Positions 1-44,899 of a DNA stretch of 64,000 bases are shown in pieces. The stretch covers positions 314,347 to 378,346 of the forward strand of contig JAAOMT010000777.1 of NCBI GenBank assembly GCA_016748015.1, in the 5' to 3' direction. A program made the translations under genes and the position numbers. Under the pieces are notes generated by a model. It was not told the origin of the DNA and ran no database searches. It saw only the letters and a list, made by a program, of their open reading frames with translations. Every line of letters starts with the position of its first letter. Positions within the stretch are counted from its first letter, which is position 1. This DNA is from Geosiphon pyriformis uo1. Its lineage: Eukaryota; Fungi; Glomeromycota.

Positions 1-590
1 TTTTTTGTACTGCTGCATAACTTTCTATATGTAGATAAAAGAATCAATGAAAAACGTTGCCAGAGAGAATTTCTATGTCATTTGAATCTATTGATCTGAT
101 AATCTCTATCTAGATTTTTTAACTTTTATTTTTTTGAACGCAGTTTTAGAACTCATAAAACGTTTTATGCGCAGTCATTTATCAAGTCCCAAAGCGGATG
201 GTTTTATCGAGTGTAAAATAAAGTTGTATGTACACTACAATCAGTACCAAAATTTCTACGCGACTAACTAGGTAGTTAATGTAATTTCGGTGTGGATGTA
301 GCGAAGCTATAGGCAGTTATCTAAACTTGGATAGTATAGTCTATGACGTTTCCTGCGTCGAAAAACCAGGCATTATATCACAAGTTGACTTGATTCAAGG
401 AAATCTAACAAGACTTGGTGTGTTGAGAATTGAATGTGATTCGTATTAGCTTTGAATTGTGGGATTTTATTTGCCCATTAAGAAAATAGTAATGAATAAT
501 TGTGCAAACATTAAATCCGCAGCTTGGGGCATATATAAACGACTGTCACAGAAAAACCTTCATGCTTACGCTGATTCTCCATTCTTCATA

Positions 591-3361: not shown

Positions 3362-3542
3362 TAAAAGTTAAACTATACTAATCAATGACTGATTACGCTT
3401 ATTGATAATTTATAAAAAAAATTTGCTCAGCGCTTAAACCATTGGACAGGTTCACCATGCTTAACTTTCTGGCAGTGGCTATAAAATAAATCAAATTTCC
3501 CTATTCTTTAGAAAAAAAAGTGTACTTTTTAAAATTACTATT

Positions 3543-6124
3543 ATGGCAGATAGGCTCACAAGAATAGCAATCGTAAGCACTGACAAGTGCAAGCCAAAAA
3601 AGTGTAGACAAGAATGTAAAAAATCTTGCCCCGTCGTAAGAATGGGTGAGTGGTATTAAAGAATTGAAATACATTAGGCTTTTGTTACCATTTTCAAGTT
3701 AGAGTGTTGATTTAAGGTGGTAGCATTATCATTTGAACTCGAACTCTCTGGGAAGCTAACCATACTTCAATAAATATTCACTTTTTCTAAAGTTTAATTC
3801 ACTCCTCATTTTTCAGGAAAACTCTGTATTGAGGTCACTCCTGATAGCAAAGTTGCATTCATTTCGGAGGAACTATGCATTGGTTGTGGAATATGTATCA
3901 AAAAATGCCCATTTGGTGCGATTATGATCATCAACCTCCCTACAAATTTGGAAAAAGAAGTTACACATCGTTACTCGGCCAATTCCTTTAAACTACATCG
4001 GCTGCCAGTTCCACGACCTGGTCAAGTGCTTGGCTTGGTGGGAACAAATGGTATCGGCAAGAGTACAGCAATTAAAATCCTAGCTGGGAAACTGAAGCCA
4101 AATCTTGGAAGATATGAGGTAACACATTTTTTTATTCAATACCTTTACGCAGGTTGCGTGTTGATTACAGTTAATACATATTTTTATATTGTCATTTTAA
4201 ATCAAAATAGGAACCACCGGATTGGCAAGATATTCTAAAATACTTCCGAGGATCAGAGCTCCAAAATTATTTCACCAAGATTCTCGAAGATAACTTAAAG
4301 GCATTTAATAATAGTGCAATTCGATTTTAAGTTTTACCCGTTTCCTTACAAGTAAAGCTAATGATTTTAAAAATTAGGCCATTATCAAACCGCAATATGT
4401 TGACCATATTCCTAAAGCAGTAAAAGGCTCGGTAACGAAGCTAATTGATGCCAAACTTGAAAGAGATAATAGACAGGAGATGATTGATGCGTTGGATTTG
4501 AAGGACGTTCTAAACCGTCAAGTCGAGGAATTATCAGGCGGAGAATTACAACGTTTTGCTATTGGTATTGTATGCATTCAGAAAGCTGATATGTAGGTAC
4601 TAAAAATATTTCTCTCATAATTCTTATTTCTCGAATTTCGGGTTGATCATTTTTTATTAATTAAGATATATGTTTGACGAACCTTCATCATACCTGGATG
4701 TGAAACAACGTTTGAAAGCAGCGAGAACAATAAGAGGCCTGTTGGCCCCTACGACGTAATTTGATAACTCATGGTATTTGTTACTCGTTGAACTACTTAC
4801 CAAAACTCTGGCTCTATTTTTTAGCTATGTTGTCGTAATTGAACACGATTTATCAGTCCTTGATTATCTTTCGGATTTTATATGTGTATTATATGGAATG
4901 CCGTCTGTCTATGGTGTTGTAACTATGCCATTCTCTGTTCGTGAAGGTATAAACATTTTTTTGGACGGTAAAGTTCCCACCGAGAATTTGCGTTTCCGTG
5001 AGGAGTCTTTGACATTCAAGTTAGCAGAAACGGCTGAAGATGAAAAGGAAGTAGAGAAATATCGAAGATACAGTTATCCAGATATGACCAAGACGCTAGG
5101 TAAACTTTTATTTCATGATGTAATATTCAGTTATCGACGCTATTGTAAATTGATATAAAATAAATATTTTAGGTGACTTCAAACTTGAGATCAAGGCAGG
5201 GGAATTTACAGATTCTGAAATTATTGTCATGCTTGGTGAAAATGGAACGGGAAAAACTACATTTATTCGTCTATTGGCTGGTGCCATACGACCTGATGGC
5301 GATGAATCTGTTCCAGAGTTAAATGTGAGCTATAAGCCTCAGAAAATATCTCCCAAGTTTCAAGGGACAGTACGGATGCTTTTTCTGAAAAAGATCAAGG
5401 CAGCTTTTATGCATCCCCAGTTCCAAACGGACGTCGTCAAACCCATGCAAATTGAAAGCATTGTTGATCAAGAGGTGATACATTTATCTGGTGGGGAATT
5501 GCAGCGTGTGGCTATCGTGCTCGCGTTGGGACAACCGGCAGACATTTATTTAATTGATGAGCCTTCCGCTTACTTGGACTCTGAACAACGTATTGTTGCA
5601 GCCAAAGTAATAAAAAGGTACGGAACAAAATTCGAAGAGTGGAGCTGCAAAAAATCCAACTGTAGTTGAAATTTGTCTACTCTTCTTTTCCAGATTCGTT
5701 CTCCATAATAAGAAAACAGCATTTGTTGTGGAGCACGACTTTATAATGGCAACTTATTTAGCTGATCGTGTCATAGTTTATGAAGGTGTACCTTCAGTAA
5801 CCGCAATGGCCAACACGTATTTATTATATTGAATTTATTTTTCTGCTTTTATGTAAAATTAAAAATTTCTTAAATCAATTTTGTCTCTATAGGCCTCAAT
5901 CTTTGTTGACAGGCATGAATGCTTTTTTGTCGAGTCTTGAAATTACGTTTCGACGCGATCCTACAAATTTCCGACCAAGAATCAACAAAGCTGACTCTTT
6001 AAAAGATAAAGAACAAAAACTTAGTGAGTAACTAAATTCTTGATTATTTTTCATATTCAATTTCTAAATCGCAATTTATTATAATTTAGGTGGAAATTAC
6101 TTCTTTTTGGAATCTGAAGCCTAA
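3543..6124 (+). CDS. RLI1: ABCE1/RNase L inhibitor, Fe-S ABC ATPase for ribosome recycling; multi-exon
   Basis: N-terminal [35 protein letters not shown] and [13 protein letters not shown] Fe-S motifs; two ABC cassettes ([26 protein letters not shown] x2); C-terminal [15 protein letters not shown]...[10 protein letters not shown]. Confidence 0.97.
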
Positions 6125-9550: not shown

Positions 9551-10084
9551 CAACAACAACAACTACTACTACAAACAACAAATTTACCGCTTTTAACATT
9601 AGGATCACCCCATCGACCGTTAGCAAAGTGTATATGATTTCGACTCATTTTGGAAAGACCTTTGGATTCTAGAAGAGTGAACCGGAATTAGGATTTGGAA
9701 CTAAAATTACTATAGGATAAAAAGTCTTTTGAAATTTCTCACCTATACTTTTCCAATTTGTCATATAAGTACCATGTATAACTTGTGGGAACAAAGTGGG
9801 ATCCGTAATTCTTACCAACTCTAATTGTTCAACCTTGAAGGAATATTTCCAATTCGAACAAAGAAAGTTAAAAGATATTATTTTTGAATATGATCTAAAT
9901 TTAAAAACTCTGGGTCCAACATACTTGAATACTATGGCCTTGATTTGCACGAATGAACCATTTTGAGCCACCAAGCTCAGATACTTCTTCAACAAGCTTA
10001 TACCGTTGCTTATCATTGTTTTGAACAGCTTCTTTTATGTCAGCAAAACTTTTTCCCCTTAATTTAGGTAGATTCAACTTTGAA

Positions 10085-10159
<75 letters not shown>

Positions 10160-10381
10160 GATAATTTAGAAATTTCTCAAATCGATTAAAATTTATCATA
10201 AATAGAATATACGCGTTTTGTCATCACGTACCAATTCATCCAAACTAACAAATCCATCAGGACGAACATGAAGCCCTTCCTTTTCAGCACCATGACGTAA
10301 AATATATGCTAAAATCTTTGATAAACGAATTTTTGGATCTTCATTTTTTCTCTGCTTTTCATTTCGACGTGAGGAAGACAT
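9128..10381 (-). CDS. TPT1: tRNA 2'-phosphotransferase (NAD+-dependent; Tpt1/KptA family), 6 exons
   Basis: The spliced translation has the Tpt1 signatures LSKILAYILRHGA, RPDGFV, NDKQRY, IRANQGHS, VIHGT, GLSKMSRNHIHFA and FESANGVILSKG. All introns are GT-AG. Confidence 0.95.
9460..9571. repeat. Compound (AAC)n/(AAT)n/(ACT)n microsatellite in a TPT1 intron
   Basis: Trinucleotide tract visible directly in the sequence. Confidence 0.9.
10085..10158. repeat. (AAT)n microsatellite in TPT1 intron 1
   Basis: Directly visible. Similar tracts lie at ~11428-11479, 13742-13785, 13968-14071, 14291-14358 and 25371-25444. Confidence 0.9.
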
Positions 10382-11425
10382 TGGATGAATAAATTTAAGT
10401 TTGTGTATAATGATTTTATAAATCCCCAGTCCCCCGATTACGGTCTTTATATATATATATATATATAATTTCCAAGATATGTAGTAACATATGTCAAAAA
10501 TCACATGATTTATATTTGTTCAGAAAATGAAACTGCGGTTAAAAATTTTCGGGTATTTCTATACACACACAAAAACTCCACTTACTCAACTTAAAAGAAT
10601 AAATTGGGTAAGAGATTTTCAGTCGAGACTATTAAAGAGACACTGCGGTAACTGCTTTTTCTATTTTTAATGTGAAAAAAGGGATATGTGCTAACTTTCT
10701 TTTTTTGTACAACATGACCAATTATATTTTTTGTTTACGAGTCATTTCCCAGGTGGAGAGGAGGAGGAGGAGAGAGAGTGGGGCTAACTTAAAAAAAAGT
10801 CTAATATATATATATATTCAAAAAAGGTATCAGTAGTGTTTTGTTTTTTTCTTTTATAATTTGAAAAAATATTTCATATATATATATATATATATATGAA
10901 TAAACTTCCTCCCCTCTCCCCATTTTTTTTTTGAAATTATTTTTACATCAAAAATGCCTAATCGTGAAAATTTATCATAATTGTTTTTTTTTAACAAATT
11001 TATATTTAAAAAAAAAAACCTGTTTGAGGTTTTCAAAGATTTCTTATTTATTCTTGTCAAAGTAATTCATATCTATGATCCAAGGTCCCTGGTTACGAAA
11101 CTTGAATTTTTCTTGTCCCCAGAGTATAAAAAAAACTTTAATCGTTAAAATCTAAAGGTTCAAGAGTAACCAAAAAGACCATCATGAAAAAAAAAAGGAT
11201 CAAAATTCCCTTTGAAAATTGAGGGTATCCATTAAATTTTTATTTCGGTGAATTTTTAGTCTTTTCACCAATAAATACTAAAATCAAGCTTTGTCACATT
11301 CTTCTTAAATTCATAGGCCTTTATCAAGTTTTGAGGTGCTTGTCATTTTTCCTATGAACCACTAATGATTTCAAAATAACATACTGAAAGAAAGATACTT
11401 TCCGATGCCGGCTACCCTTCTCTTC

Positions 11426-12090: not shown

Positions 12091-12968
12091 TTAGTTTGAT
12101 GCTTTGGTGGGTGCAGTTTTTCCAACTTTGGAAGGTTTCTTCGGTGATGTGGTAGGTGGGACTCCTGGCTTTTCCCCTTTCTTCTTTGGCAACAATTCCA
12201 TATGAATATTTGGAAGAACACCACCTTCAGCGATATGTACATTTCTCAACAAAATGTTAAGTTCCTCATCGTTTCTTATGGCCAATTGTAGATGCCTTGG
12301 AATAATTCTTTGTTTCTTATTATCGCGGGCAGCATTACCAGCAAGTTCGAGCACTTCGGCCGTAAGATATTCGATCACAGCCGCGAGATATACAGGTGCT
12401 CCAGCTCCTACACGGTCAGCATAACGTCCTTTCTTAAGAAGACGTCCCATACGACCCACCGGGAATGTAAGACCTTAATTTCAAAAACACATTTTGCCAC
12501 AATATATTAGTGAACGGGATCCAATATATATATATTATATTTAGGTTGTGAATGAGCGAGCGAGCGGGCGGGCGGATGAATGATTGGACAAATTTAAATC
12601 ACCTGCTTTAACGCTCTTTGATGTTTTGGAAGAAGCAGATACGGCTTTGGCAGCCTTGGTGGCACTTTTTTTACTCTATAAGAGGGAAGAGATGGGAAAG
12701 CATGCTATTAAACGGTTTACTTTTTTTCATTTAATTTTTAATCATACTCAAATAAATTATTGATGCATAATATGATTGAGTAGCTTTTATGATGTTATCA
12801 GTGATAGGCGACTTTTTCACCCGATCGTTTTGAACAGATAAATATGTCTAACTAAATACATACCCGACTTTTAGTTGCTTCCTCACCACTTGGTGTCGGG
12901 TTTGGAGCTGTATTCTCGGCACCGCGAGCGCGAGAACTTCTTTCTGTAGCCTTATCAGTGGTTGACAT
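12091..12968 (-). CDS. Histone H2A variant, ~186 aa, 3 exons (12968-12864, 12675-12603, 12473-12091), with extended N- and C-terminal tails
   Basis: Histone fold [79 protein letters not shown]...GGVLPNIH. Two GT-AG introns join the exons in frame (105+73+383 nt). Confidence 0.93.
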
Positions 12969-16209: not shown

Positions 16210-17355
16210 CTCAAATTATAATAATCTAAAAGATTTTCCATTCATTATTGTAGAATAAATTTATTTTTATTTTGAGATTCCGAGTTTCAAAAAAATTAGC
16301 CATATTTTTATTCATATTTTATTAATCCTTAATTTTTTTTCTTAATTTAATTTCAATTACTCTGAAACATTACCAAAATTATGGAATTTTTTGAAGTTAG
16401 CCGTTTCTAAAAAAATAAATTTAATGAACTATATTAATCAAACTAAATAATTTTATGAATTTGAAGAAATTCTATTTTTAGTATTCAAATCTAAAAAATA
16501 AAATCAAAAATAATTTTTAAGGGGTCTGTATTTAATGAAGCATTCCCTTCGATATATTTCATCCTTAAAAAACCTATCAGAAAAACAGTGAGAATAATTT
16601 AGAATTAATAGCGACCTTTTAAGTTTGATTTTCAATCAAGAGTTTTAGCCTCCACCTGATAAATATTAAGCTGTATGTTTTAGAAAGCAGTTTTTATTAA
16701 TAATCGATCGGTAGCACAATCAAATTTCTTTAGATGCCTATTAAAAGCAGGAAATTTCATCCAACATTAAAACTTAGACTTGAATAATTTTAAAATGGTT
16801 ATTGACTAGATTTATTAAAATCAAGAATTGGAAGGAAAACTTATCGAGATATAAGTCTTTAAATTTAATTTCGAATTAATAATTTTGACAAAATATTCAA
16901 AATCTACTAGCCTAATTCCCCATATTAAAAACTGGTATTGAGATATATTTAGTAAAGATATGAATTTTAAGTTAAGATATTTATCTTATTATTCATAATC
17001 AAGATTATAAAAAATAATACCAAAGTTCCGTACTGGATTAAAAAAGTTTCTTATATTTATTGATTTTTTTTAGCATTTAATTAAATCTCAGCTTTAAAAA
17101 TAATAGCTTGATGCGCATAAGTTAGATCAAGAAAACATTTAAAATTTATATAATAGCATGAAGGAAGTAAATCGTCTGCTAAAGATGATTTAAAAAAGTC
17201 TCTACATTAACAAAGAATTCAAAGCGCATAAGCAAAAAGGTGAATATTAAAAATGATAGCATTATCTAAAAAAACCTATTTATGAGCAAGCAAAGCGTTT
17301 CACCAGAAGAAGCTTCACAAGTCTAAAAATATATTCATTAAAAAGTTTTTCAAAA

Positions 17356-18315
17356 ATGATGAACATTGAAGCCAAGCTTATTAAACTTTTGTTCACTCTC
17401 ATTGCTCTTTCATCCCCTATCATCCAAAACTTTTACGCATCTGCAGCTCCTATTCAAACGCGTAATTTCGTGCCAGGTTTCAAGCCGGTAATTTTCCTTA
17501 ATACCGCTCAAGAAACTATTGCATCCAATGAAGCAGCCAACACAAATCAATTAGAAATTGAAGCAGCTAATGCAGCTCAAACTGCAAATACCTATGATAA
17601 TGAGGCTGCATCAACTTTACTTGTTAACAAACGCAATTTTCTGACAGGATATAAACCAGTCATCCTTCTAAATTCTGCACAAGAGACCATTGCGTCCAAT
17701 GAAGCAGCCAACACAAATCAATTAGAAATTGAAGCGGCAAATGCAGCTCAAACGGCGAATACATATGATAATGAGGCAGCATCGACTTTACTTGTTAACA
17801 AACGCAATTTTCTGACAGGATATAAACCAGTCATCCTTCTAAATTCTGCTCAAGAAACAATTGCATCTAATGAAGCCGCCAACACAAATCAATTAGAAAT
17901 TGAAGCGGCAAATGCAGCTCAAACGGCGAATACTTATGATAATGAAGCTGCTGCAACTTTCTTACTTAACAAACGCAATTTCCTAACAGGATATAAGCCA
18001 GTCATTCTTTTCAATACTGCTCAAGAAACAATTGCATCCAATGAAGCCGCCAACACAAATCAATTAGAAATTGAAGCGGCAAATGCAGCTCAAACGGCGA
18101 ATACTTATGATAATGAAGCTGCTGCAACTTTCTTACTTAACAAACGCAATTTCCTAACAGGATATAAGCCAGTCATTCTTCTTAATAATGCCCATGAAAC
18201 CATTGCGTCCAATGAAGCAGCCAACACGAATCAATTAGAAATCGTGGCGGCCAATGCAGCTCAAACGGCAAATACCTATGATAATGAGGCTGCTGCTACT
18301 TTTCTTTTTAATTGA
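17356..18315 (+). CDS. Secreted Kex2-processed repeat protein (KEP-like precursor), signal peptide + 5 x 57-aa repeats
   Basis: Hydrophobic N-terminus (LIKLLFTLIALSS), then repeats of NFLTGYKPVILLNSAQETIASNEAANTNQLEIEAANAAQTANTYDNEAASTLLVN separated by KR. Intronless, with many synonymous differences between units. Confidence 0.88.
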   Translation: MMNIEAKLIKLLFTLIALSSPIIQNFYASAAPIQTRNFVPGFKPVIFLNTAQETIASNEAANTNQLEIEAANAAQTANTYDNEAASTLLVNKRNFLTGYKPVILLNSAQETIASNEAANTNQLEIEAANAAQTANTYDNEAASTLLVNKRNFLTGYKPVILLNSAQETIASNEAANTNQLEIEAANAAQTANTYDNEAAATFLLNKRNFLTGYKPVILFNTAQETIASNEAANTNQLEIEAANAAQTANTYDNEAAATFLLNKRNFLTGYKPVILLNNAHETIASNEAANTNQLEIVAANAAQTANTYDNEAAATFLFN

Positions 18316-20558
18316 TTAGTCGTTTAACTTTCTATTAATTTAGGCTAGAAACTAAAAAATTAGTTATAATGTATATTATTATATTTTAAAAACAAGAATT
18401 CTAAAAATAATTAAAATCGAGTTTCTTTATAATTATTAAAGAAATTCATCAACTAAGTAAAGGCATAAGGGTTTTCCTTAATGCTAAAATTTTCAACATG
18501 AAATAATTAGAATCACAAGCTTTATTATCTAAAAAAAAAAGTTTGGAATTGAGAATATATCTTTTTCTTTAAGCTCGCTGAAAATTATTTGGGGCATAAT
18601 GTGATAATTTCATATCAAGCCGTGTTTGAGAGAAAACATTTGTGGATAGGCAATGAATTTAATTCGGAAAGTGATAGGCTCTGATGGGCCTTTACCGATC
18701 TCTCTTTTTAATAAAGCTTCCATGACTACATCCGAGCGAGATGTATTTTGTATAAATGCTTTAATTTCATTATCCAAATAGTACAAAAAAACTTTAAATT
18801 TTATTAAATTTCGGACAATCCAACATTGAGATTGTTCTTTAATTAATATATCTATTTTGAGAAGCCATTGAATTTTGTAAAATACGTTAGATCAAGCCAA
18901 AGAAGCGCTATATGTATACTTAACCAATTTTTTATTATCAGTTTTAAAATTTATACTTTTTACAAAAGGTATGAAAATACTGTACAAATTTACAATTAAA
19001 TTTTGCTCATGTTTTGATCAATTTTGCCCATATTCTTACACTAGCTGTTTTCAAAGTTTTATTTAAAGAAGACATATTTTTGATATGATTTAAAAACCAG
19101 CCTAATTATTTAAAACAAGCAATAATTAATTAAAATTAGTTGGAGTTAATAAAATTTATTAATATATTTAGTTTTAATTGAGTAATATCAAATAAGCAAC
19201 TAGAAAAGTTTTATTATTCACATTCAATTCTGTTTTATAAATTTATAGTTTTACAATATAAAGAAGTTGGTCAATACTAATCAATTAGCAAAAATTTTAA
19301 TCAATAAAAATAAGTCATGTATTTTAATTTTGGTATATTAACTTAAAACTAAATTAAATTAAATTAAATTAATTTTTATAATTAAGAATAAATATAATTG
19401 TTCTAAATTTCTTTTAATCATTTATTTTTAAGAACTAATCAAGAAAAATTAAAGCCAATTTGGTTAACAGTTAAATAAAACTTGAATAAAAAATCAGAAT
19501 TTATAGAAATTAAATATTTTAGTTATTTAAAAACAACTTTGATTAATAACTAATCAGATAATTTTAAATAAATTAAAAACCAGAATATAAAACTTAAGAT
19601 TTATAATAAATTATTTATTATAAAAAATTTTTAATATAAAAAAATTAACTTAAACAAAATAATATTTATTTCAATTTTTATATTTATTATATTAATTTTT
19701 TTATTATTTTTCATTTGTATTTTTTATAAAATATATCAAATAATAAGCACAATTAAAAAAATATTTACTTAATAAAAATTTTATTAAATTTAAATTTATA
19801 TTTTTTTATAAATTTTTGTACAAAAAAACTTAATACATATACAAATCAAATTATTAATCATAATTGTTCATATTTTTTTTGGTATATTGAATAAAAAATT
19901 TATTTTAATATAAATTATTATGGTTTTTTATTTATTTAATATGTTTATTAATAACTTTATATATTCTTTACGTTTTTTAAAATGTTTATTAAAACCATTT
20001 TGCATTATATATATTTTTACATTATATACATTAAGAAACCAAATTTTTACATTATGAGAATTGATTGCCAACTTTTTTTCTAATATATATAATAATATTT
20101 TATAATTGCAGTTTCAAAAAATATTTACCATTCAACAAAATAATGAAAAAAATATTCTCATTTTTTAGATTAAAATCAGACAAACTAAACTTGCTTAATA
20201 CTTTTTAATGATAAGTCAAACTTTTATTGAAAATTTATCAACTATAAAATTGGCCATTTGTAAGAATAATTAACTCCGAAAGATTACCTCAAAACTAACT
20301 TTTTAAGAAAAAGATATATTCTCAATTCCAAACTTTTTTTTTTAGATAATAAAGCTTGTGATTCTAATTATTTCATGTTGAAAATTTTAGCATTAAGGAA
20401 AACCCTTATGCCTTTACTTAGTTGATGAATTTCTTTAATAATTATAAAGAAACTCGATTTTAATTATTTTTAGAATTCTTGTTTTTAAAATATAATAATA
20501 TACATTATAACTAATTTTTTAGTTTCTAGCCTAAATTAATAGAAAGTTAAACGACTAA

Positions 20559-21347
20559 TCAATTAAAAAGAAAAGTAGCAGCAGCCTCATTATCATAGGT
20601 ATTTGCCGTTTGAGCTGCATTGGCCGCCACGATTTCTAATTGATTCGTGTTGGCTGCTTCATTGGACGCAATGGTTTCATGGGCATTATTAAGAAGAATG
20701 ACTGGCTTATATCCTGTTAGGAAATTGCGTTTGTTAAGTAAGAAAGTTGCAGCAGCTTCATTATCATAAGTATTCGCCGTTTGAGCTGCATTTGCCGCTT
20801 CAATTTCTAATTGATTTGTGTTGGCGGCTTCATTAGATGCAATTGTTTCTTGAGCAGAATTTAGAAGGATGACTGGTTTATATCCTGTCAGAAAATTGCG
20901 TTTGTTAACAAGTAAAGTCGATGCTGCCTCATTATCATATGTATTCGCCGTTTGAGCTGCATTTGCCGCTTCAATTTCTAATTGATTTGTGTTGGCTGCT
21001 TCATTGGACGCAATGGTCTCTTGTGCAGAATTTAGAAGGATGACTGGTTTATATCCTGTCAGAAAATTGCGTTTGTTAACAAGTAAAGTTGATGCAGCCT
21101 CATTATCATAGGTATTTGCAGTTTGAGCTGCATTAGCTGCTTCAATTTCTAATTGATTTGTGTTGGCTGCTTCATTGGATGCAATAGTTTCTTGAGCGGT
21201 ATTAAGGAAAATTACCGGCTTGAAACCTGGCACGAAATTACGCGTTTGAATAGGAGCTGCAGATGCGTAAAAGTTTTGGATGATAGGGGATGAAAGAGCA
21301 ATGAGAGTGAACAAAAGTTTAATAAGCTTGGCTTCAATGTTCATCAT
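20559..21347 (-). CDS. Second copy of the KEP-like precursor, 4 repeats
   Basis: Inverted, near-identical copy of 17356-18315 lacking one repeat unit. Confidence 0.85.
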   Translation of the reverse strand: MMNIEAKLIKLLFTLIALSSPIIQNFYASAAPIQTRNFVPGFKPVIFLNTAQETIASNEAANTNQLEIEAANAAQTANTYDNEAASTLLVNKRNFLTGYKPVILLNSAQETIASNEAANTNQLEIEAANAAQTANTYDNEAASTLLVNKRNFLTGYKPVILLNSAQETIASNEAANTNQLEIEAANAAQTANTYDNEAAATFLLNKRNFLTGYKPVILLNNAHETIASNEAANTNQLEIVAANAAQTANTYDNEAAATFLFN

Positions 21348-22974
21348 TTTTGAAAAACTTTTTAATGAATATATTTTTAGACTTGTGAAGCTTCTTCTGG
21401 TGAAACGCTTTGCTTGCTCATAAATAGGTTTTTTTAGATAATGCTATCATTTTTAATATTCACCTTTTTGCTTATGCGCTTTGAATTCTTTGTTAATGTA
21501 GAGACTTTTTTAAATCATCTTTAGCAGACGATTTACTTCCTTCATGCTATTATATAAATTTTAAATGTTTTCTTGATCTAACTTATGCGCATCAAGCTAT
21601 TATTTTTAAAGCTGAGATTTAATTAAATGCTAAAAAAAATCAATAAATATAAGAAACTTTTTTAATCCAGTACGGAACTTTGGTATTATTTTTTATAATC
21701 TTGATTATGAATAATAAGATAAATATCTTAACTTAAAATTCATATCTTTACTAAATATATCTCAATACCAGTTTTTAATATGGGGAATTAGGCTAGTAGA
21801 TTTTGAATATTTTGTCAAAATTATTAATTCGAAATTAAATTTAAAGACTTATATCTCGATAAGTTTTCCTTCCAATTCTTGATTTTAATAAAGTTAACCA
21901 ATTAATGTTTTTCACCAGGATTTGGATGAATCAACATACTAAACGTAGCAAAATCTAAATGATTTTAACATTGGAATAGCTGCTTGTTTCATTATCTTAA
22001 TTTGGTTACTTTTTAACATCATAACATAATTTTATCTTTTAATTAATAAGATTAATAACATAAATGGTTTGTTTATTATTTTTATTTAACAATAATCATT
22101 AAATCCAACTTCATTTATCACTCAAATTTCTTTGTTAATTAGCATTAATCAAATGTATTAACTAAATTCATAAAAAAAAGGGCTTGGCTTAAATCAGGAA
22201 ATAATTAATTAACCGAATCGGGTAACAGAAAGCGCATATCGTTACCTTTTTTGAGTGCTTCACAAAAGTTAAAAAATTAGTCGTACAAAAACCGGTTTTT
22301 GATTAAAATCTTTCACTATTATCTATCGCTTGTCAAGGAACAAGATTCAATTCATATATGAAATGGTTCACTTCTAATGAATAAAAAATTTTGATCGAAG
22401 CTTGGCTCGAATGAGATGATTATCGAAAAATATATCCTAAATTCGAGTTTAGCCTTTAAAAGCCCTCACCTTTTGTAATCATAATAAACCCTGAAGGTTA
22501 GAATGGCTTAAAAAAGTTCGAGGTGATTGGTGGGGATTTCTGTTCGCATTGACAATTTTGTATATCAGGCATGCATTAAATCCTCGTGGATATTTGATGC
22601 ATAATAGCGTCATGCTGAAAGCCGATCAATAATAGGAATTTATTACTCGGCCGCGTGGCTGGCTAACTATCGACAAAACACACACACTTTTTTTTTGCGT
22701 TTCAAAAGTTTTGTTGAACACCCCCCCCCCCAACTTCTTTGCGATATTCCTGTTTGTGCTATTGCGAGTATCTGGTATATTTTCCAAGGTCTTGAGCACG
22801 AGATCAATAGCAAACCTTCTTTACCCAAAAACTTTCTTCTTATTACGGTATAACAGCCCACTTTTTTGAAAAAAGACGGGAACTTTTCATTCCTTTTCAT
22901 TCTGTATAATAGAAGATAATTTTAAAGAAGCAACTTATTTTAAAAGCTTCAGTACAAAGCCTTTACCTTTAAGT

Positions 22975-24568
22975 ATGTCGCGACAACAAGAATATTCGGA
23001 ACATCCACAGAAGCAAGTACCTTCAGAGAGTCGACTGCAACAGCAGGAATATCAACAACAGGAAGAGGAATGTTCAGATAATCAACAACAGGAAGAGGAA
23101 TATTCCCACTATCCCCAACAACAGGAACATCCATATTATCCTCAACAACAAGAACATTCATATTATCCTCAACAACAAGAACATTCATATTATCCCCAAC
23201 AAGAAAATTCATATTATCTCCAACAACCAGAAAATTCATACTATACTTCACAACATGCACAATACCCACCCAATAATCAATACTCACAGCAACCCTATAC
23301 TCAGCCTCTACAAAGAGAATATAACGCCTCATCCCAAACGCAACCACTACCACCCCATTACGAGAGCGGAAGAAATACACCTATTAATGACCCCTATCTA
23401 CCACATTCTAATAGTAATAGTGAAGGTTATGGCTATTATCAGACTCCACCACCTGAACAGAGCCCTGAATACTCCCGACAGCCTGATCGTAATGGTAGTG
23501 ATAAAGGGGGTGATGATGATTTTGCGGATAAGTTGGGAAAAGAATCAATTCCTGAAGATGATGGATGGGAATATCGGCCACCTCATCATGGTCATATTAT
23601 TACCAGAGGAGAGATGATCAGTCGAATAGTACCATATTATGAAGTAAGTGATAAAAGATTTTGAATTTTGATGGAACATTAAATGTATTCGAGAAATCGA
23701 TCATGTAGAAATATTTAATTTATGAAATTTGAAATTTCACTTCTTTAGATGTTTGCTATTAACGTGTTTTTCTTGGGTTACAAAGTTCTTGATAACGCTC
23801 AGCGAGCCGTTGGAGGCAGTACTTATCGAATAGTATTATATGAAGCATGCACAGATCGTTGGAAAATTGAGGATTTCGATTTCTGTGCAGCATCTCGTTT
23901 AGTAAAGGGTTTGATCGGAGGTGCTATAATTTACTTTATAGTTACTGCACTATTTGCTATCGCAATAGCTATGGAGTTAAAAAGGAAAGGCTACCATGCG
24001 ACTTTTACAGCTCTATGGAATTCTCCATTTTTCTTGGTCTGTTTCTTCTTTCCGGACGTAAAACGTGTTGATATAATGAGCATACCCAATAAATATGTTA
24101 AATTAACCCTATGGACACGAGCACATATACAACGAATCTCAATGGCGGTCTATTGCTTTGTATGTGCGACCTTGGTACTCAATTCTTTGACCAACAAGTA
24201 AGATACATGAGATTAGATTAAAATTTTCTTTGGGATCGATTTATTAAATTCTTTCTCTTTTATTATAGAACAGCCGAATCTGCTAAAATCAGAGGAGAGA
24301 ATTTGAATGATGGAATAAAAAAATGTAAATATCTTGACCAAAATTTTATCTTGATTTCTAATATAAATTTTTTTTTAATCTTTCATCTATTTAATTTGGT
24401 ACAGACTACAATCCTTACTTGATCCCATATTACGTTGCCCTTTACATTTTCTTTAAAACACTATTGACGATGTTAATTGAGATCTTTCAAGACAAACATA
24501 TTCGAAACCAACCCGAATTAATTGGACGATCTTACGAGTCCATTAAGTTAAACGGAAAGAAAGAATAA
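22975..24568 (+). CDS. Hypothetical membrane protein with a Q/Y/P/E-rich repeat N-terminus and 3-4 predicted TM segments; exons ~22975-23643, 23749-24197, 24269-24324, 24405-24568
   Basis: 9-aa repeats QQQEHSYYP. GT-AG introns keep the frame. Hydrophobic segments LIGGAIIYFIVTALFAIAIAM, ISMAVYCFVCATLVL and PYYVALYIFFKTLLTMLI. Confidence 0.75.
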
Positions 24569-24972
24569 AATCAGGTTCACGTTCAAATGGACAATGATAT
24601 ATGTCATCACCTCTTTTAGCCGAATTATATCATTATCATAAACTTGTAATATTTGTACGAAATTAGATTTTCATAGATGATAATTATTTATTTCTGGACT
24701 TATAATAAATTTAACATTAAGTGCATTCTTTTTATGGCTGGCGATCTTCTAAATGTTTTCAATCTCTGAAACAACAATGGCAAAAATGTTCTATTGGAAG
24801 TGGTACAAATATTGATTGCAGTTGTACAGCTTGGAAAGAAATAATTATGCAACTACGAAACAGTGTTAAAACTGTACGACATTATGACCTAAAAAGTTCA
24901 GATTAGTAAACACGATTTCAAGACATCTTTTTTTTTTTTCGGGCAAGGGATTATTGAAAATGATAGAAAGAA

Positions 24973-25050
24973 NNNNNNNNNNNNNNNNNNNNNNNNNNNN
25001 NNNNNNNNNNNNNNNNNNNNNNNNNNNNNNNNNNNNNNNNNNNNNNNNNN
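24973..25050. other. Assembly gap (N run); further gaps at ~56611-56911, 57800-57819, 59709-59728 and 60778-60935
   Basis: N runs in the sequence. Confidence 0.99.
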
Positions 25051-25367
25051 CCCCCCCCAATTTTCTTAATTGTTATCTTCAGAGAGATATTGAATGATAA
25101 AAAATAAAATTGAAATTGAAAAAGGTAAAGAATTTTTAGAAATAATCTCGATATATATTTTTTTTTTACCGTACACACCAAAAAACTTTTTTCCTTTTAG
25201 GAATTATTATTATCATCATTATTATAATTATAATTATAATTATTATTATTATTATAAATTTTTTTTAAATTTCCTTTTTTTCAAAGAAAAATAATAATCT
25301 TATTAGGACAAACGTAGAATTTGATTTTCTTTTCTCGGTATACGCAAAGAATTTGATACGAAAAGAA

Positions 25368-25445
<78 letters not shown>

Positions 25446-26231
25446 CTTTTTTCTTTTTCTTTTTCTTTTTCTTTTTTCTTTTTTCTTTCCTTTTTTTTTT
25501 AGGAAATTATGTTTTTTTTAATTTTCTTTTTTGAAACGGAAAATTAAAAAATTTTAATACAAAACTTTTAATTACAAAAAATAAATTCCTTAATAATATT
25601 AAATGCGGGAAAAAGTATCTACCGCGATCTATATAGAATATGTATCATGTTAATCGGTTAATTAGAATATTATTAAATTTGATTAAAGACATTATGCATA
25701 CAAACCCCTACCCTTTTTTACCAAATGATTTATCAAATACTTTAAAAGTAAAAAATCAAAAAATAACCTTGGAAAAATCATAAGTGAGTTACTATGATCT
25801 GTGGATCATGTTACAAGTCCTGCAATCAGAAAGTCATAGTTGTTGTCGAAACCAAATACCAATATTTTGTATTTATTTCAAAGTGAACACCTTATTATCA
25901 AGGAATAGAGTCCTTCGCTCACGCGTTCAAATCTCAAATCCTGAGGTTTTCCCTATCAAAGATCACAAAATTTTCGCATTAATGAATCAGATGTTCCCAG
26001 ACTTTTTTGTTATTAAGGAGTGACCGTGCGATTCGACCTGTATATAAAGATTTAGGATTTTAAAAAAAAAACAACAACAACAACAACAAAAAAACTTTTC
26101 TTAATTCTTTACCTTCACTCCTTCAAATTGCCAGGCTGCAATCTATCAGGAAAGCTATTGAAGAGCTTCTTAATAATCAATATTGAAAAACAAAATTCAT
26201 TATCACTTCTTAAACTCGAACCAATTTCAAA

Positions 26232-27173
26232 ATGAGACAAGGCTTAATTCTTGTATTCTTCCTTATGACATTTGCTTTGACAGCTCTCGCGTTGCCTAAT
26301 ACACAGAGAAAGCATAGGAAACACAGATTTGGAAACAAGAAACAGGTGCAAAACACTTCACCAGCTACCTTAACCAAGAGTGCAGCATCCCCAATCTTAA
26401 CCAAGAGTGCAGCATCCCCAATCTTAACCAAGAGTGCAGCATCCCCAATCTTAACCAAGAGTGCAGCATCCCCAATCTTAACCAAGAGTGTAACATCCCC
26501 AATCTTAACCAAGAGTGTAACAAGTACTTCATCAAGAGTAACTTCCCAAGCTTCACCAGCACCAACTCAAACTCAAACTCAAACTCCCCCAATTAATAAT
26601 AATAATAATAATAATAATAACGATTTCCTTTCTGGAGGTCCCAGTGGGAAAGTCTGTGACGTCTCAAAACTTCCTGCAACAAATGGCGAGCAAAAAACTG
26701 GCGGTTCATGTTCAAATACTCAATTGGGTGAAATTCCTTCTGTTGATAAAATGGTTTCCTCGCTAATCACCTCCCCTGGAAATGGGGCTACTTTGAGCGC
26801 CAATAAACCATTCACTGTTACTGTTGTCACCTCTAATTTGATAACTGGAAACTTTGATGATCCTAATAAAGAATATTATTTATTCTCCCAACAACTTAAC
26901 AAAGACGGTTTCGTTAAAGGACATCAACATGTTACCGTTCAGGAATTGAGTTCTAATGGCCGACCACCATCCGCGAAAGAAGTTAAGTTTTTCAAAGGTT
27001 TGAATAATCCTGCGAATAACAATGGTGAACTTAGTGTTGTGGTCGATACTCCTTTGGGTCCTGGAACATATAGAATTTGTACAATGTCTAGTTCATTTGG
27101 GCATCAACCTCTTCTAATGACGGTTGCTAGACGTGGTGCTCAAGATGATTGTATTCGTGTCACCATGAAGTGA
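26232..27173 (+). CDS. Secreted protein: signal peptide, basic RKHRKHR segment, (LTKSAASPI)n Ser/Thr repeat stalk, and a Cys/His-containing C-terminal domain of a conserved uncharacterised fungal family
   Basis: Intronless 313-aa ORF with 27-bp tandem repeats at ~26370-26520. The C-terminal motifs TNGEQ..GSCS, GHQHVTVQ, FFKG, GTYRICTM and HQPLLM..ARRGAQDDC resemble a widespread fungal secreted family (recognised from memory). Confidence 0.8.
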   Translation: MRQGLILVFFLMTFALTALALPNTQRKHRKHRFGNKKQVQNTSPATLTKSAASPILTKSAASPILTKSAASPILTKSAASPILTKSVTSPILTKSVTSTSSRVTSQASPAPTQTQTQTPPINNNNNNNNNDFLSGGPSGKVCDVSKLPATNGEQKTGGSCSNTQLGEIPSVDKMVSSLITSPGNGATLSANKPFTVTVVTSNLITGNFDDPNKEYYLFSQQLNKDGFVKGHQHVTVQELSSNGRPPSAKEVKFFKGLNNPANNNGELSVVVDTPLGPGTYRICTMSSSFGHQPLLMTVARRGAQDDCIRVTMK

Positions 27174-28148
27174 TTTAAAAAAGTGTAAAGATTTTTTTTT
27201 GGTTTGAATTTCTCTCTGCTTTCCTTTTACAGGGATATCGGGAAGTAAAGGTTAAAACCAAGTTCATAGATTTGATAAAGCTCTCAAAAATTTCTTTTTA
27301 CATTAGTAAATAAATTTTTATTTAATGCTGGTAAAAATAAAGCTACGCCCAGTCGCGTAATGAATTTTTTTATTAAAGAATTTCTTTGGGATATTCGAGG
27401 AATTATACGTAATAGATATTAATTTAGCATATTAATATCAATATTTATTTCAATAATGAAAATTTGAGAATGTATAAAAAATATTATCAAACAGGAAAAA
27501 AAAAGGTACATTTTTAAAATCTTTGAGTGAAACGCGTATAACTGAAACCTATTAAAAAAAGGGAGATCAAACAAAGAAATTGAATACACATTGAAATGAA
27601 ATGAAAATAAATAAATGAAATCAAATGAAAAAAGAATAAATTTATTAAAATGAATCATTAGAATATTTTAAGAACAAATTAGTATTATCAACGGGATGAT
27701 GCATAAAATGGTTTTGATTCGGAATGATTCGATTACGTCAGAAGTCTCTAAACCTTTGAATGATATCTCAAAAGAATGAGGTATTAATGACATATGTCAA
27801 GAGAAAAGTGACATTTCGATTTCTTCTTTTCTTGGATAAATGATTTCTTAAATAAAAATTGAATTTGCTTGAAATTGAAGCAGCTATTATAGTTAACCCG
27901 CCAATCAGAATAAATTTGAGTGAAAAAGATTGTGAGAAAAAAAAAAAAAAGTAATGACCAAAAAACAGAGCAAAAATGCGGTAAATAGATATACAAGAAA
28001 GTAGTCTTTTTCATTTTACTTTTGAATTGATTTCAAAAATTAATTCAACTATTCAAAAATATATATATATAAAATTACCCTTTTATTGCAGAATATAAAA
28101 TTATATTATTACAATTTTTTAAATAAAAATATATTTGTGAATAAAAAT

Positions 28149-28930
28149 CTAATTAAAAAGAAAAGTAGTAGCAGCCTCATTATCATAAGTATTCGCCGTT
28201 TGAGCTGCATTTGCCGCTTCAATTTCTAATTGATTTGTGTTGGCGGCTTCATTGGATGCAATTGTTTCTTGTGGAGAATTTAGAAGGATGACTGGTTTAT
28301 ATCCTGTAAGAAAATTGCGTTTATTTAACAAGTAAAGTTGATGCAGCCTCATTATCATAGGTATTTGCAGTTTGAGCTGCATTAGCTGCTTCGATCTCGA
28401 GTTGATTTGTGTTGGTTGCTTCATTGGATGCAATGGTTTCATGGGCATTATTAAGAAGAATGACTGGCTTATATCCTGTAAGAAAATTGCGTTTATTTAA
28501 CAAGTAAAGTTGATGCAGCCTCATTATCATAGGTATTTGCAGTTTGAGCTGCATTAGCTGCTTCGATCTCGAGTTGATTTGTGTTGGTTGCTTCATTGGA
28601 TGCAATGGTTTCATGGGCATTATTAAGAAGAATGACTGGCTTATATCCTGTAAGAAAATTGCGTTTGTTAACAAGTAAAGTTGATGCAGCCTCATTATCA
28701 TATGTATTTGCAGTTTGAGCCGCATTAGCTGCTTCGATCTCGAGTTGATTGGTATTGGCGGCTTCATTGGATGCAATAGTTTCTTGAGCGGTATTAAGGA
28801 CAATTACCGGCTTGAAACCTGGCACGAAATTACGCGTTTGAATAGGAGTTGCAGACGCGTAAAAGTTTTGGATGATAAGGGACGAAAGAGCAATAAGAGT
28901 GAGCAAAATTTTAACTTCACTGTTCATCAT
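28149..28930 (-). pseudogene. Third, diverged KEP-like copy: intact 145-aa two-repeat ORF (28493-28930) followed by two out-of-frame repeats
   Basis: Same signal peptide and repeats. GTT AAC AAA CGC is altered to GTT AAA TAA ACG C (+1 nt, stop) at two successive Kex2 junctions (~28493 and ~28321). Confidence 0.8.
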
Positions 28931-31418: not shown

Positions 31419-34400
31419 AAAAAAAATCTTTCTCTTGTTGATCCCCTAGTTATAACGAGAGATAAAATATACTGAAGAAATAATTTTCAATTATTCCTTT
31501 TTCCCTTTATTTTCACAGTTATTTCTTTCAACATATCTTTGTTTATGAGTATAGATCTAGTAGGCTTTTCTACTGATAAGTTGGTGTTACTCATAGAAAT
31601 ATAGGAAATATATTAGCATAATTATTAGCCAATCAGAAGTAAGTGTAGTAAATGTGGAATTCCAGAATTCCTCTCAGGAATTGCAAGATTCCAGGAATTT
31701 CAGGATTCCCAACAAAGAATTGCAGGATTCCAGAATTCCAGGATTCCTCTCAAAAGAATTGCAGAATTCCTGTTGTAAAGAATCGAGGAATTGAGGAATC
31801 CCAATTATGTATATATAGCAGTAGTGTTAGAAACAGAAAAGACAGAATCAATACCACAGAATCCTTAGCCAAGAAACCAATCATCAAATAAATAATTATT
31901 CTATATCTCAATCTACTATTTACTATTAACACTTCATGTTGATAGTAATTGCTACTTAATCACGCTGGAACAATAGCTCTTGATCACAGCTATTGATAAG
32001 ATACTAATGGACCAAATTGCCTTGGCTTATTTTCTTCATTTTCTTTATTTTTATTTTCTTTATTTTATTTCCTTTCTTTCTTTGATTTTGTTGTTGTATA
32101 CTAATTGATTAAAAAATTAAGCACTGAGTTATTGACGTCAAGGATAGCCTGGTAAAAGACCCAGAAATAAGGGTAGGATTTTATATATATTATCGGATAG
32201 CTTACCAGAAGGACATGACTGCCAGACTAAATCTGGCCACTATGCTGAGAAAGAAATTGAGAAAACCACTTGAGGATACAACCACTATCAACCTTATTGA
32301 ATCTCTGTCCATTATACAAAGAACTCCACAACAAAAACCTTCAGATCAAACAAAACCTTCAGATCACTATCAACTGCAATTAGCTTTGAGCACCAAGTTA
32401 AGAGTTTGTGATTTAATTCAACAGCAGAAATAATCACCTGTAACATTGGTGTCTGTTCTGGCTGGGTTGAGGATCTGGTCTGATGTCAAAACCAAACAGT
32501 TGGTGAGCACTCACTTGTGCAGTGCTTCTTACAAAAAACCCAAAAAACCTACTATCATGAACAATATGGTCAAGATATTAGCTGGCTCTCTATTTCTTGT
32601 GAATATAGTTATTAATGGTGACAAACCTGCAAGGTTCTGAGGCAGTAAAGTAAACAGCGAGACAAGTAGCATTAGCAGTATATTAAACTTGGAGAACATA
32701 AAGAATACAGTTGCAGAAGAAACCAGTTATGCAAATTCAAATACCTTGAAAGTCTATAATGCTATGAATGATGCAACACCCAAGAAAATTTGTACCAGGA
32801 CATATGTTATGAGCAGCAAGCCAAAGACTATTTCTTTCAACAACTTGAGCGATAACAATAATGATATTTTGATACTTCCAGTTCCTAAATTTTTCTGGTG
32901 CTAAGCATTTGCTATCTGTTGGGTTATATGTTATAAATAGGCAAAATTTTGAGCCAGTCAAATTTTTTGTATTAGATATTGAGCTATTTGCTGTGTTAGA
33001 CAAAACTAATAGTAATAAGTTAATTGTTATCAAAAAAATTTTTTATCGAATTGATGGTTTTGGAGGGACATCCATTTTTTCAAAATTTTCTAGAATCATT
33101 AGATCTTCATTTACATCTGAATTTAGTTTGTATAAGGCCAAAGAATTGGCAATCTGTGAGAAAATTATTATTAATAATGATTTAAGAAAAGTAAATAACT
33201 ATTCAGATCAGAAGGTGATTGTCAAGGAGATTCCAGTTGATCTTTCCAAATCAGCTATAGAATCTGTTTTTTCTAAGTTTGGCAAGATTGTGTCAATCAA
33301 GATGCAGCTGATTGGTCTATGGCAAAAAGCTTTGGTAGAGTTTGAGTCTTCTGAAATAGCTGGTTTGGTTGTAGCTAAATGGTCTGTTCTTATGAGAAAA
33401 AATTCTGTTTGTGTGGCAAAAGCTGTTAATAATAAACAATTATGGGTTTCCAGAGATTTGCATCAGACATTGTTTTATATCCTTCCAATTGGTACTATGG
33501 CTCATGATCTTTCAGATTTGTTGGAATTATATGGTAGGAAAACTTGCTTTATTGGCTGTAATCCCAGCTCTTATGTGTATGATAGATGTGCAATTGTGTG
33601 TTTTGCTGATGAGGCATCCAAATTGACTGCTATTGGTTCTATTTCAGTGTTTAAAAGTGTGAATTTGCAATGGGCTGGTCTTTCTCTGGCTTGTTGCACC
33701 AAATATAAACAATTTGGTCATATCTCTAATATGTGTTCAGTTGGTGGAAATTCTAGTGTTTGTGGGAAGTGGATGGTAACTGATCAAAATTGGGTCTACT
33801 TGGCTGGTATTTATAAGAAGAAACAGGCCCCTATTGTCCGTTCAGTTTCTTTTGGTAACAAAACTTGGGCTCAAGTAGCTGGTGGTTTCTCTTCTCATGT
33901 GGCTCTTTTGGTTCTTTTTAGTACTGGTCTGTTCCTTGTTGCTGAGACATCTATATTTGCTTCTGCTTCCCCTAGTGACCATGGCTTTTATGGTTATCTA
34001 GTATCTTTGGAATGCTCTCTTGAACTTTTGGCTAACCAGGTCTCTGGTATTTTGAAGAAATTGGGTTCTATAGAATTGGTGTTCCCAGTGGTCACACCTG
34101 TTGTTTTTTCTCTGGTGGTTTCTGTGTTTGTGGTCTCTAGTTTGGATATAAATATGGTTTTAGATAGTGTTTTAGTGATTTCTGTTCCTTCTTCTTAGGT
34201 CATTGATAATACAACTACTGGCTTGAGTTTGAGCAGTTCTAAGGTTTTGACCATCAAGGTCAGTGGTTTGGAATCCAAGATAATGGCTTTGGAAGTATCA
34301 GTTGAGTCTATTTTGGATAAATTAAACTGTTTGTGTTCAGGTTTGAGTACATCGGCTCTCTTTACTTTTCAATGAGTGTGTTAGTTTGGAAGATTACTAT

Positions 34401-43966: not shown

Positions 43967-44899
43967 TGTTACAAGTGATTATTTCTGTTGTGGAATTGAG
44001 TAACAAACCCGTAATTTGATGCTCAAAAGCTACTTTTGTGGATGATGTGCAGAAGGTATGGTATCTGAAGGTTTTGGTTGATCTGAAGGTTTTTGTTGTG
44101 AAGTTCTTTGTATAATGGACAGAGATTCAATAAGATTGATAGTGGTTGTATTCTCAAGTGGTTTCCTCAATTTTTTTCTTAGTGTGGTGGCTGGATTTAG
44201 TCTGGCAGTCGTGCCCTTCTGGTAAGCTATCCGATAATATATATAAAATCCTACCCTTATTTCTGGGTTTTTTACCAAGCTATTCTTGATGTCAATAACT
44301 CAGTGCTTAATCTTTTAATCAATTAGTATACAACAACAAAATCAAAGAAAGAAAGGAAATAAAATAAAAAAAATAAAAATAAAGAAAATAAAGAAAATAA
44401 GCCAAGGCAATTTGGTCTGTTAGTATCTTGTCAATAGCCGTGATCAAGAGCTATTATTCCAGCATGATTAAGTAGCAATTACTATCAACATGAAGTGTTG
44501 ATAGTGGATAGTGGATTGAGATATGGAATAATTATTTATTTGATGATTGGTTTCTTGGCTAAAGATTCTGTGATATCGATTCTGTTTTTTTCTGTTTTTA
44601 ATACTACTGCTATATATACATAATTGGAATTCCTCAATTCCTCAATTCTTCATGACAGGAATCCTGGAATTCTTGGAATCCTGCGATTCCTTTGAGAGGA
44701 ATCCTGGAATTCTGGAATCCTACAATTTCTCATTGGGAATTCTGAAATTCCTGAAATCCTGCAATTCCTCATTGAGAATCCTGAAATTTCTGGAATCCTG
44801 TAATTTTTGAGAGGAATTCTGGAATTCCACATTTACTATGCTTACTTCTGATTGGCTAATAATTATGCTAATATATTTCCTATATTTCTATGAGTAACA
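43967..44899 (-). repeat. 3' LTR of the Gypsy element
   Basis: TG...CA ends; direct repeat of 53309-54191. Confidence 0.9.

Follow-up and report, generated by a model that had tools for sequence, protein, structure and literature searches.

A conserved 55-residue peptide family encoded by predicted Kex2-processed repeat precursors in Geosiphon pyriformis and other Glomeromycotina, with a bacterial homologue

The window analysed here, a 64,000-nt stretch of Geosiphon pyriformis uo1 contig JAAOMT010000777.1 (positions 314,347 to 378,346), contains three intronless loci, designated copies A, B, and C, each encoding a putative secreted precursor built from near-identical units of 55 amino acids (aa) separated by Lys-Arg (KR) (Table 1). 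Their coordinates are those given by a first-pass annotation made from the sequence alone, and Tandem Repeats Finder detected periods of 171–172 nt at all three. Each unit occupies 57 codons (171 nt), i.e., 55 residues and KR, and the first unit is preceded by IQTR; this layout and a hydrophobic N-terminus bear out the initial description of a signal peptide followed by repeat units. Copy B equals copy A minus 171 nt, with 0 mismatches, and in both copies the stop codon occupies the place of the next KR. In copy C, units 2 and 3 are 100% identical 172-nt blocks, each with one extra terminal base (insertions near 28495 in unit 2 and near 28323 in unit 3) that results in a stop codon instead of KR, and units 3 and 4, reaching 28149, are out of frame. 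The unit numbers initially reported (two, four, and five) thus hold for copies A (five) and B (four), but copy C has four units, only two of which lie in its open part. The window therefore contains an intact gene in two copies (A and B) and a truncated paralogue (C).

Copies A and B lie on the arms of an inverted duplication that is real and supported by DNA reads. Read contigs were compared with positions 20150–26100 (5951 nt, likeness 80), using a DNA run that may be the assembly's own source; arm contigs showed depths of 173 and 187, as compared to 68–71 in unique DNA, and broke exactly at 20305 and 21892, and the spacer unitig had a length of 1795 nt (1735 + 2 × 30), as an inverted pair predicts. 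The depth and the contig breaks rule out an assembly artefact for this pair; the one-unit difference between copies A and B is an assembly reading, as the contigs cannot tell whether unit number truly differs. A sequencing error behind the copy C frameshift was also ruled out, since the extra base is present in the reads, which show it inserted at the corresponding position of copy B (21075, depth 183). Loose ends of the reads at 20782 and 20879 point to more diverged family paralogues in the genome, e.g., one with a unit beginning NFLQGGYA. The assembly gap lies about 3.6 kb from copy B and about 3.1 kb from copy C, and both of its flanks are single-copy; because it is intergenic, past the last exon (24620) of an unrelated neighbouring gene, no family reading frame depends on it. 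No contig bridging the gap was found among the DNA read contigs, and only the linkage of copy C to copies A and B depends on scaffolding.

Table 1. Positions of the repeat-precursor genes and associated features in the window (amino acid positions where marked aa)
Feature	Position	Strand	Remarks
Copy A precursor, 319 aa, 5 units	17356..18315	+	protein present in NCBI set
Copy A signal peptide	about aa 1–30	+	inferred
Copy A short pro-piece ending IQTR	aa 31–36	+	
Unit A1, 55 aa + KR	17464..17634	+	
Unit A2	17635..17805	+	
Unit A3	17806..17976	+	
Unit A4	17977..18147	+	unit-length stretch missing from copy B
Unit A5	18148..18315	+	stop codon exactly at KR position of other units
Copy B precursor, 262 aa, 4 units	20559..21347	-	
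Copy B units	21239–21069, 21068–20898, 20897–20727, 20726–20559	-	
Copy C, signal + 4 units	28149..28930	-	open frame only 28930–28493, 145 aa, two units
Left arm of inverted duplication	16811..18569	+	copy A + 545 nt upstream + 254 nt downstream
Right arm of inverted duplication	20305..21892	-	carries copy B; read depth 173–187
AT-rich spacer between arms, 1735 nt	18570..20304		one unitig of 1795 nt in reads
Assembly gap	24973..25050		intergenic, outside every copy
Divergent neighbour of copy C, 120 aa	29255..29617	+	signal, pro-piece ending KR, Pro/Gly/Ile/Tyr-rich rest

The mature unit has a mass of 5.8 kDa and an isoelectric point (pI) of 4.05, and contains 11 Ala, 12 Asn plus Gln, six acidic residues, one basic residue, and one Gly per 55 aa. 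The window's units contain no Cys, as first noted, but some paralogue units carry one. Compared pairwise, the window units differ mostly at synonymous sites (synonymous divergence, dS, 0.77 vs. nonsynonymous divergence, dN, 0.059), which confirms the initial view that selection acts on the peptide; 78 pairs of Geosiphon units gave a dS of 1.0, a dN of 0.078, and a dN/dS of about 0.08, with a proportion of nonsynonymous differences (pN) of 0.038 in the core. The leader has a dN/dS of about 0.47. These values indicate that the units are under strong purifying selection, and we regard it as virtually certain that this is a real, selected gene family.

Secretion of the precursor and its cleavage at KR are, on sequence evidence, very likely. 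The signal peptide, predicted from hydrophobicity, includes a hydrophobic 11-mer at aa 8–18 (Kyte–Doolittle hydropathy 2.55), and a scan of the precursor found no second membrane anchor, i.e., no later 19-mer above a hydropathy of 0.73 and no tail resembling a glycosylphosphatidylinositol signal. Among 69 family units, KR or RR follows 51, and in 15 others the same position coincides with the C-terminus; only two contain an internal dibasic pair. Unit length is nearly constant (55–61 aa) across four fungal orders; in Acaulospora, double sites excise a short spacer and leave the peptide ends unchanged, and some Racocetra and Dentiscutata junctions are degenerate. Kex2 accepts sites with an aliphatic residue at P4 and LxxR-type sites (PMC8528282), and IQTR, IETR, and IKAR, found in the family, are consistent with this extension of the motif.

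The closest match outside the window (84%) is G9A89_021452/021454 of G. pyriformis, and a further member in this genome is G9A89_008472; the three loci first described as a three-copy family are thus present, but two of them are duplicate arms and the genome holds more. G9A89_021452/021454 (L001/L002, 8432–11399) also form an identical inverted pair, placed tail to tail with 2968-nt arms, and the spacer of this pair holds a retroelement encoding reverse transcriptase and RNase H. A copy of the 120-aa neighbour of copy C, 85% identical, adjoins this pair in the same orientation (L002, 9083–9511, minus strand); the neighbour has no Pfam match and was not found beside family homologues of other genera.

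A profile search of the 55-aa unit, as the first-pass annotation had proposed, recovered homologues across four Glomeromycotina orders. The profile searches, which spanned 1.84 billion representatives and the 90% set, gave matches confined to Glomeromycotina, soil-fungal contigs, and one bacterial protein; the unit was found in Ambispora leptoticha, A. gerdemannii, Entrophospora sp. SA101, Acaulospora colombiana, A. morrowiae, Dentiscutata erythropus, D. heterogama, Gigaspora margarita (F8M41_005256), Racocetra fulgida, and R. persica. Judged from these matches and those in Glomus and Diversispora described below, the family spans four orders of Glomeromycotina, so that the Kex2-type repeat precursor first proposed for one early-diverging fungus extends to most orders of the group. 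In Glomus cerebriforme (C1645_769229) and three soil contigs, the unit occurs once, with other KR-bounded pieces after it; the Glomeraceae-type members (P0020 and P0025–P0027, on L007–L009 and L029) are mixed polyproteins in which one unit precedes two or three unrelated pieces bounded by KR, and the final piece is hydrophobic and rich in Gly, Ala, and Ser. The Diversispora epigaea member is apparently broken (L030, 4700–5600), with unit pieces in different frames around which the called 55-aa model is spliced. In the Entrophospora model (L004, 9783–11141) the tail is spliced; in the genome, the reading frame stops where it usually does in the family and, therefore, the 25 extra residues of the model are doubtful. 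These length- and word-limited searches gave no match from Rhizophagus irregularis, Paraglomus, or other fungi, which is not proof of absence. In trees, units clustered mostly by genus, as expected from repeated local duplication.

The bacterial protein (P0016, 137 aa) is encoded at positions 909–1322 of a 1575-nt soil metagenomic contig (L006, Ga0376646_0465503; JGI 3300037258) and ends in a complete unit that is 65% identical to that of Geosiphon over 52 residues and stops at the same C-terminal position. The match to the unit reached 98% in hhalign and 69 bits, as compared to at most 14 bits among 5000 shuffles. The gene has a GC content of 69% and a GC content at third codon positions (GC3) of 0.89 throughout, similar to its intronless VOC-family neighbour (0.88) and far from the fungal gene (0.27), and an AGGAGG site lies upstream; this rules out a chimera with fungal DNA. 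Ahead of the unit come a hydrophobic leader and a segment that is acidic, rich in Ala, and contains two Cys, with no KR. This upstream half faintly resembles a degenerate unit. Composition, leader style, and a Nonomuraea-like neighbour suggest an actinobacterial origin of the contig. No further bacterial copies were found in GTDB genomes, JGI metagenomes, IMG/VR, plasmids, or phages, a weak negative since the known contig itself was not returned; default low-complexity masking removes the fungal–bacterial match entirely, which also weakens blanks in bacterial searches. A search of the ESM Atlas by features gave no usable match, an actinobacterial cluster scoring 0.81 for the bacterial protein being a weak lead. 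In trees, this protein was placed close to Geosiphon and Ambispora, though not firmly, and an Archaeosporales group excluding it was not rejected (approximately unbiased test, p = 0.58). Transfer between fungus and bacterium, in either direction, would be the simplest reading of this one short metagenomic contig.

No family in Pfam, NCBIfam, or PDB (searched by sequence) fits the unit, and neither its motifs nor the locus tags were found in the literature searched, in agreement with the initial statement that it belongs to no characterised family. Single units gave nothing consistent against Pfam or NCBIfam; matches obtained with the full precursor (CATSPERG, EF-Tu D3, DnaI, NSP4, and Psb29) were sums of weak repeat matches that had no passing stretch or fell below the cut-off. 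Pattern matches on L013–L028 were attributed to chance (at most 20 bits vs. 62–87 for true units), and a lack of Pfam support led us to drop two further candidates, Bacillus coat repeats and an 11-residue Thr pattern like that of type I antifreeze proteins.

The family fits the sequence definition of KEX2-processed repeat proteins (KEPs), i.e., a signal peptide, no other anchor, and near-identical repeats bounded by KR or RR. It shares these features with the described KEPs (PMC6339444, PMC7329392), a class common in Glomeromycotina, but differs from them in the length of its unit, in the conservation of that unit across four orders, and in having a bacterial homologue; it was not found in the text or supplements of these two surveys, the supplements being possibly incomplete. 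Of the "undescribed system" initially suggested, the peptide family and the bacterial homologue are new, but precursors of this class are well known, and these fungi have many of them (PMC6339444, PMC7329392, PMC8786786); the notable points are how broadly and strongly one long peptide is conserved and that it also occurs in a bacterium. The GpRIC1–3 and GN-rich intrinsically disordered proteins of Geosiphon, Ambispora, and Paraglomus (PMC8786786) are likewise secreted, occur in the same organism, carry KR sites, and have been proposed to form amyloid; however, they are Gly/Asn-rich, whereas the unit described here is rich in Ala, Asn, Thr, and Glu. Neither these proteins nor SP7 were retrieved by profile searches with the unit. 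Secreted repeat proteins of arbuscular mycorrhizal (AM) fungi with KEX2 sites also include the SP7 family and, in Gigaspora rosea, GrSP2479 and GrSP2488 (motif a) (PMC5293756), and Gigaspora has members of the present family; GrSP2479 and GrSP2488 could belong to it, in which case the family would have been glimpsed once before, without a function.

Among systems outside this group, Rep1 of Ustilago maydis is cut by Kex2 into peptides of 34–53 aa, which build amyloid within the wall (PMC3133707), and resembles the present family in its pre-pro-protein and in its Cys-free peptides of similar size. The present peptide is strongly acidic, however, and is predicted from genes, whereas amyloid and wall localisation have been demonstrated for Rep1; no sequence homology to Rep1 was found in the profile searches. 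Precursors of ascomycete alpha-pheromones and of dikaritins (peptides made by ribosomes and modified after translation), as well as Candida Ece1, are KR-delimited repeat precursors too. Alpha-pheromone precursors differ in their XA/XP spacers for STE13, absent here, where units begin N/S/H-F-L directly after KR and are far longer. No DUF3328/UstYa or other tailoring genes were found among called genes at homologous loci, and neighbours in the window, among the reading frames scanned, are housekeeping genes, small secreted proteins, and retroelements. Identity as a pheromone, a dikaritin precursor, a candidalysin-type toxin, a Rep1 homologue, or a GpRIC/GN-rich protein was in each case excluded by the defining feature of that class.

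Our best overall explanation, to which we would give slightly less than an even chance, is that a Kex2-released peptide self-assembles outside the cell in the manner of Rep1; taken on its own, a structural, self-assembling role is by the same analogy somewhat probable. The pre-pro-protein of the intact gene would enter the secretory pathway via its signal peptide, and a Golgi protease of the Kex2 type would cut on the C-terminal side of every KR and of the first aliphatic-x-x-R site, followed by trimming of the basic residues by a Kex1-type carboxypeptidase; we infer both steps from established fungal processing and the conserved junctions. Each chain would thereby release four to five copies of an acidic 5.8-kDa peptide (pI about 4), and the repeats and gene duplication would maximise dose, as for a bulk material. 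On hyphal or spore walls the peptide may then assemble into a beta-rich layer or fibril, similar but not homologous to that of Rep1, in which the hydrophobic ends and alternating small, aliphatic, and Asn residues may form a packed face and the conserved Glu and Asp residues could make assembly dependent on pH or cations.

Beta rather than helical assembly is a tentative proposal, which we hold less firmly than the self-assembling role itself. Conservation over residues 13–50 showed a period of 2 in three subsets (power 7–9 times the mean at 160–180 degrees; permutation p = 0.001–0.01), with alternating conserved residues N25-L27-I29-A31-N33 and E36-A38-T40-D42-E44-A46-T48-L50, and no signal in the helical 100-degree band (p > 0.65). 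This pattern, a lead drawn from related sequences over a short stretch, suggests extended strands with one packed face, and register shifts at Ala-Ala-Asn points could be turns. Several observations weigh against our best overall explanation. AlphaFold2 modelled the single unit as one 38-residue helix (residues 11–48; predicted local distance difference test score, pLDDT, 71, about 80 mid-helix; predicted template modelling score 0.34) and the precursor as low-confidence helices (pLDDT 32); Ala-x-x-x-Ala motifs also suit helix packing; and a net charge of -5 to -8 with near-neutral hydropathy is atypical of a water-repellent. The internal threefold pattern initially seen in the unit is visible by eye, but comparison of the family profile with itself over all shifts placed it at chance level (p = 0.26). 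Finally, one RNA library (run X2) that contained spliced neighbours yielded no contig matching copy B and hardly any of the words of copy A, although contigs do not prove absence; this run, listed as "DNA?", was recognised as RNA because three GT-AG introns of a neighbouring gene were skipped. The RNA result weighs against high expression in the single tissue sampled and has no bearing on other tissues. The self-assembling beta or amyloid peptide first suggested is therefore plausible and has partial support from the i,i+2 conservation, but it lacks the threefold argument and is opposed by the single-helix model.

That same model supports a helical alternative, in which an identically processed, Ala-rich peptide would oligomerise via stripes of small residues into bundles or filaments, or bind cations through its conserved Glu and Asp, as a wall or matrix component. 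The spacing of conserved Ala (17/21, 31/35, and 34/38, with D42/A46) and the high Ala plus Glu content are consistent with it. However, neither conservation nor hydrophobicity has a period of 3.6 residues, and Foldseek, Atlas, and VIA-align searches with the helix model returned generic helices only (best Z 5.1). AlphaFold tends to default to helices for Ala/Glu-rich monomers, and a fold that depends on stacking cannot appear in a monomer prediction. We consider a helical assembly unlikely.

No more likely, in our view, is a diffusible signal or effector read by the plant, Nostoc, wall-associated bacteria, or the fungus itself, with the bacterial copy acting as a mimic. Signals and effectors, including SP7-like proteins, are frequent among the products of Kex2 repeat precursors (PMC5293756, PMC6339444), and restriction to Glomeromycotina, a near-invariant core, and the missing transcript in one RNA library, hence possibly stage-specific expression, would fit such a role; but 55 aa is long for a pheromone, STE13-type spacers are missing, and selection is purifying and not diversifying. 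The symbiosis effector first suggested is neither backed nor contradicted by these data. A structural role in the fungus is favoured over a host-specific effector because of the high copy output through repeats, the purifying selection, and retention both in Geosiphon, which has a cyanobacterial partner, and in plant symbionts. It is improbable that the precursor is poorly cut and acts as a full-length repeat protein, or that the window copies are silent relics; the frameshift of copy C, the degenerate junctions in some Racocetra and Dentiscutata, and the result from run X2 point in this direction, but junctions are otherwise conserved, the stop codon lies at the KR position, selection is strong, and copies A and B are both intact and have the same DNA upstream. 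A candidalysin-type peptide with membrane or antimicrobial activity is very improbable, since Ece1-like precursor logic and the helical model are outweighed by an acidic unit (net charge -5, pI 4.05) with one basic residue, a best 19-residue hydropathy of 0.73, and no amphipathic period.

Returning to the self-assembling peptide, a bolder extension, which we regard as unlikely, is that the unit is an ancestral surface module of Glomeromycotina, forming a functional amyloid or a polymer like it on the walls of hyphae or spores, and has crossed between kingdoms, being now present in a soil actinobacterium. There it would form the C-terminal domain of a secreted protein, fully adapted to high-GC codon usage, and might, e.g., co-assemble with or bind fungal walls.

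Elsewhere in the window, a gene at 26232–27173 (plus strand) encodes a secreted protein of 313 aa in which a 9-aa Thr/Ser/Ala/Pro repeat occurs 5.5 times and the C-terminal domain contains Cys; its 5′ region was transcribed in run X2, and it has no significant Pfam match. A four-exon gene at 22975–24620 (plus strand), which spliced RNA contigs confirm (introns 23644–23748, 24198–24268, and 24325–24404), encodes a protein with a Gln/Tyr/Pro-rich repeat N-terminus and a membrane-protein-like C-terminus; the two exons scanned had no Pfam match. Regions 459–5669, 9669–10504, and 12091–12968 contain housekeeping genes by sequence resemblance (tRNA ligase, RLI1-type ABC ATPase, tRNA 2′-phosphotransferase, and histone H2A). 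A nest of decayed elements resembling long interspersed nuclear elements and Ty3 elements, with dUTPase, occupies 31585–64000, with several N runs beyond 56 kb; repeats of 850–950 nt lie at 31585–32451 (inverted), 43967–44916, and 53309–54208.

AM fungi lack stable transformation, and few of their wall or surface proteins are known; a short, Cys-free, synthesisable peptide common to four orders is directly testable in vitro and by peptidomics. If the family represents merely another KEP, the gain would be a family definition and corrected gene models. Confirmation of the bacterial homologue in a genome would make it a rare case of fungus–bacterium transfer of a secreted peptide module. If the peptide does polymerise on the surface of hyphae or spores, the field would gain a named candidate for AM-fungal surface properties (adhesion, wetting, and persistent soil protein) and for contacts with bacteria.

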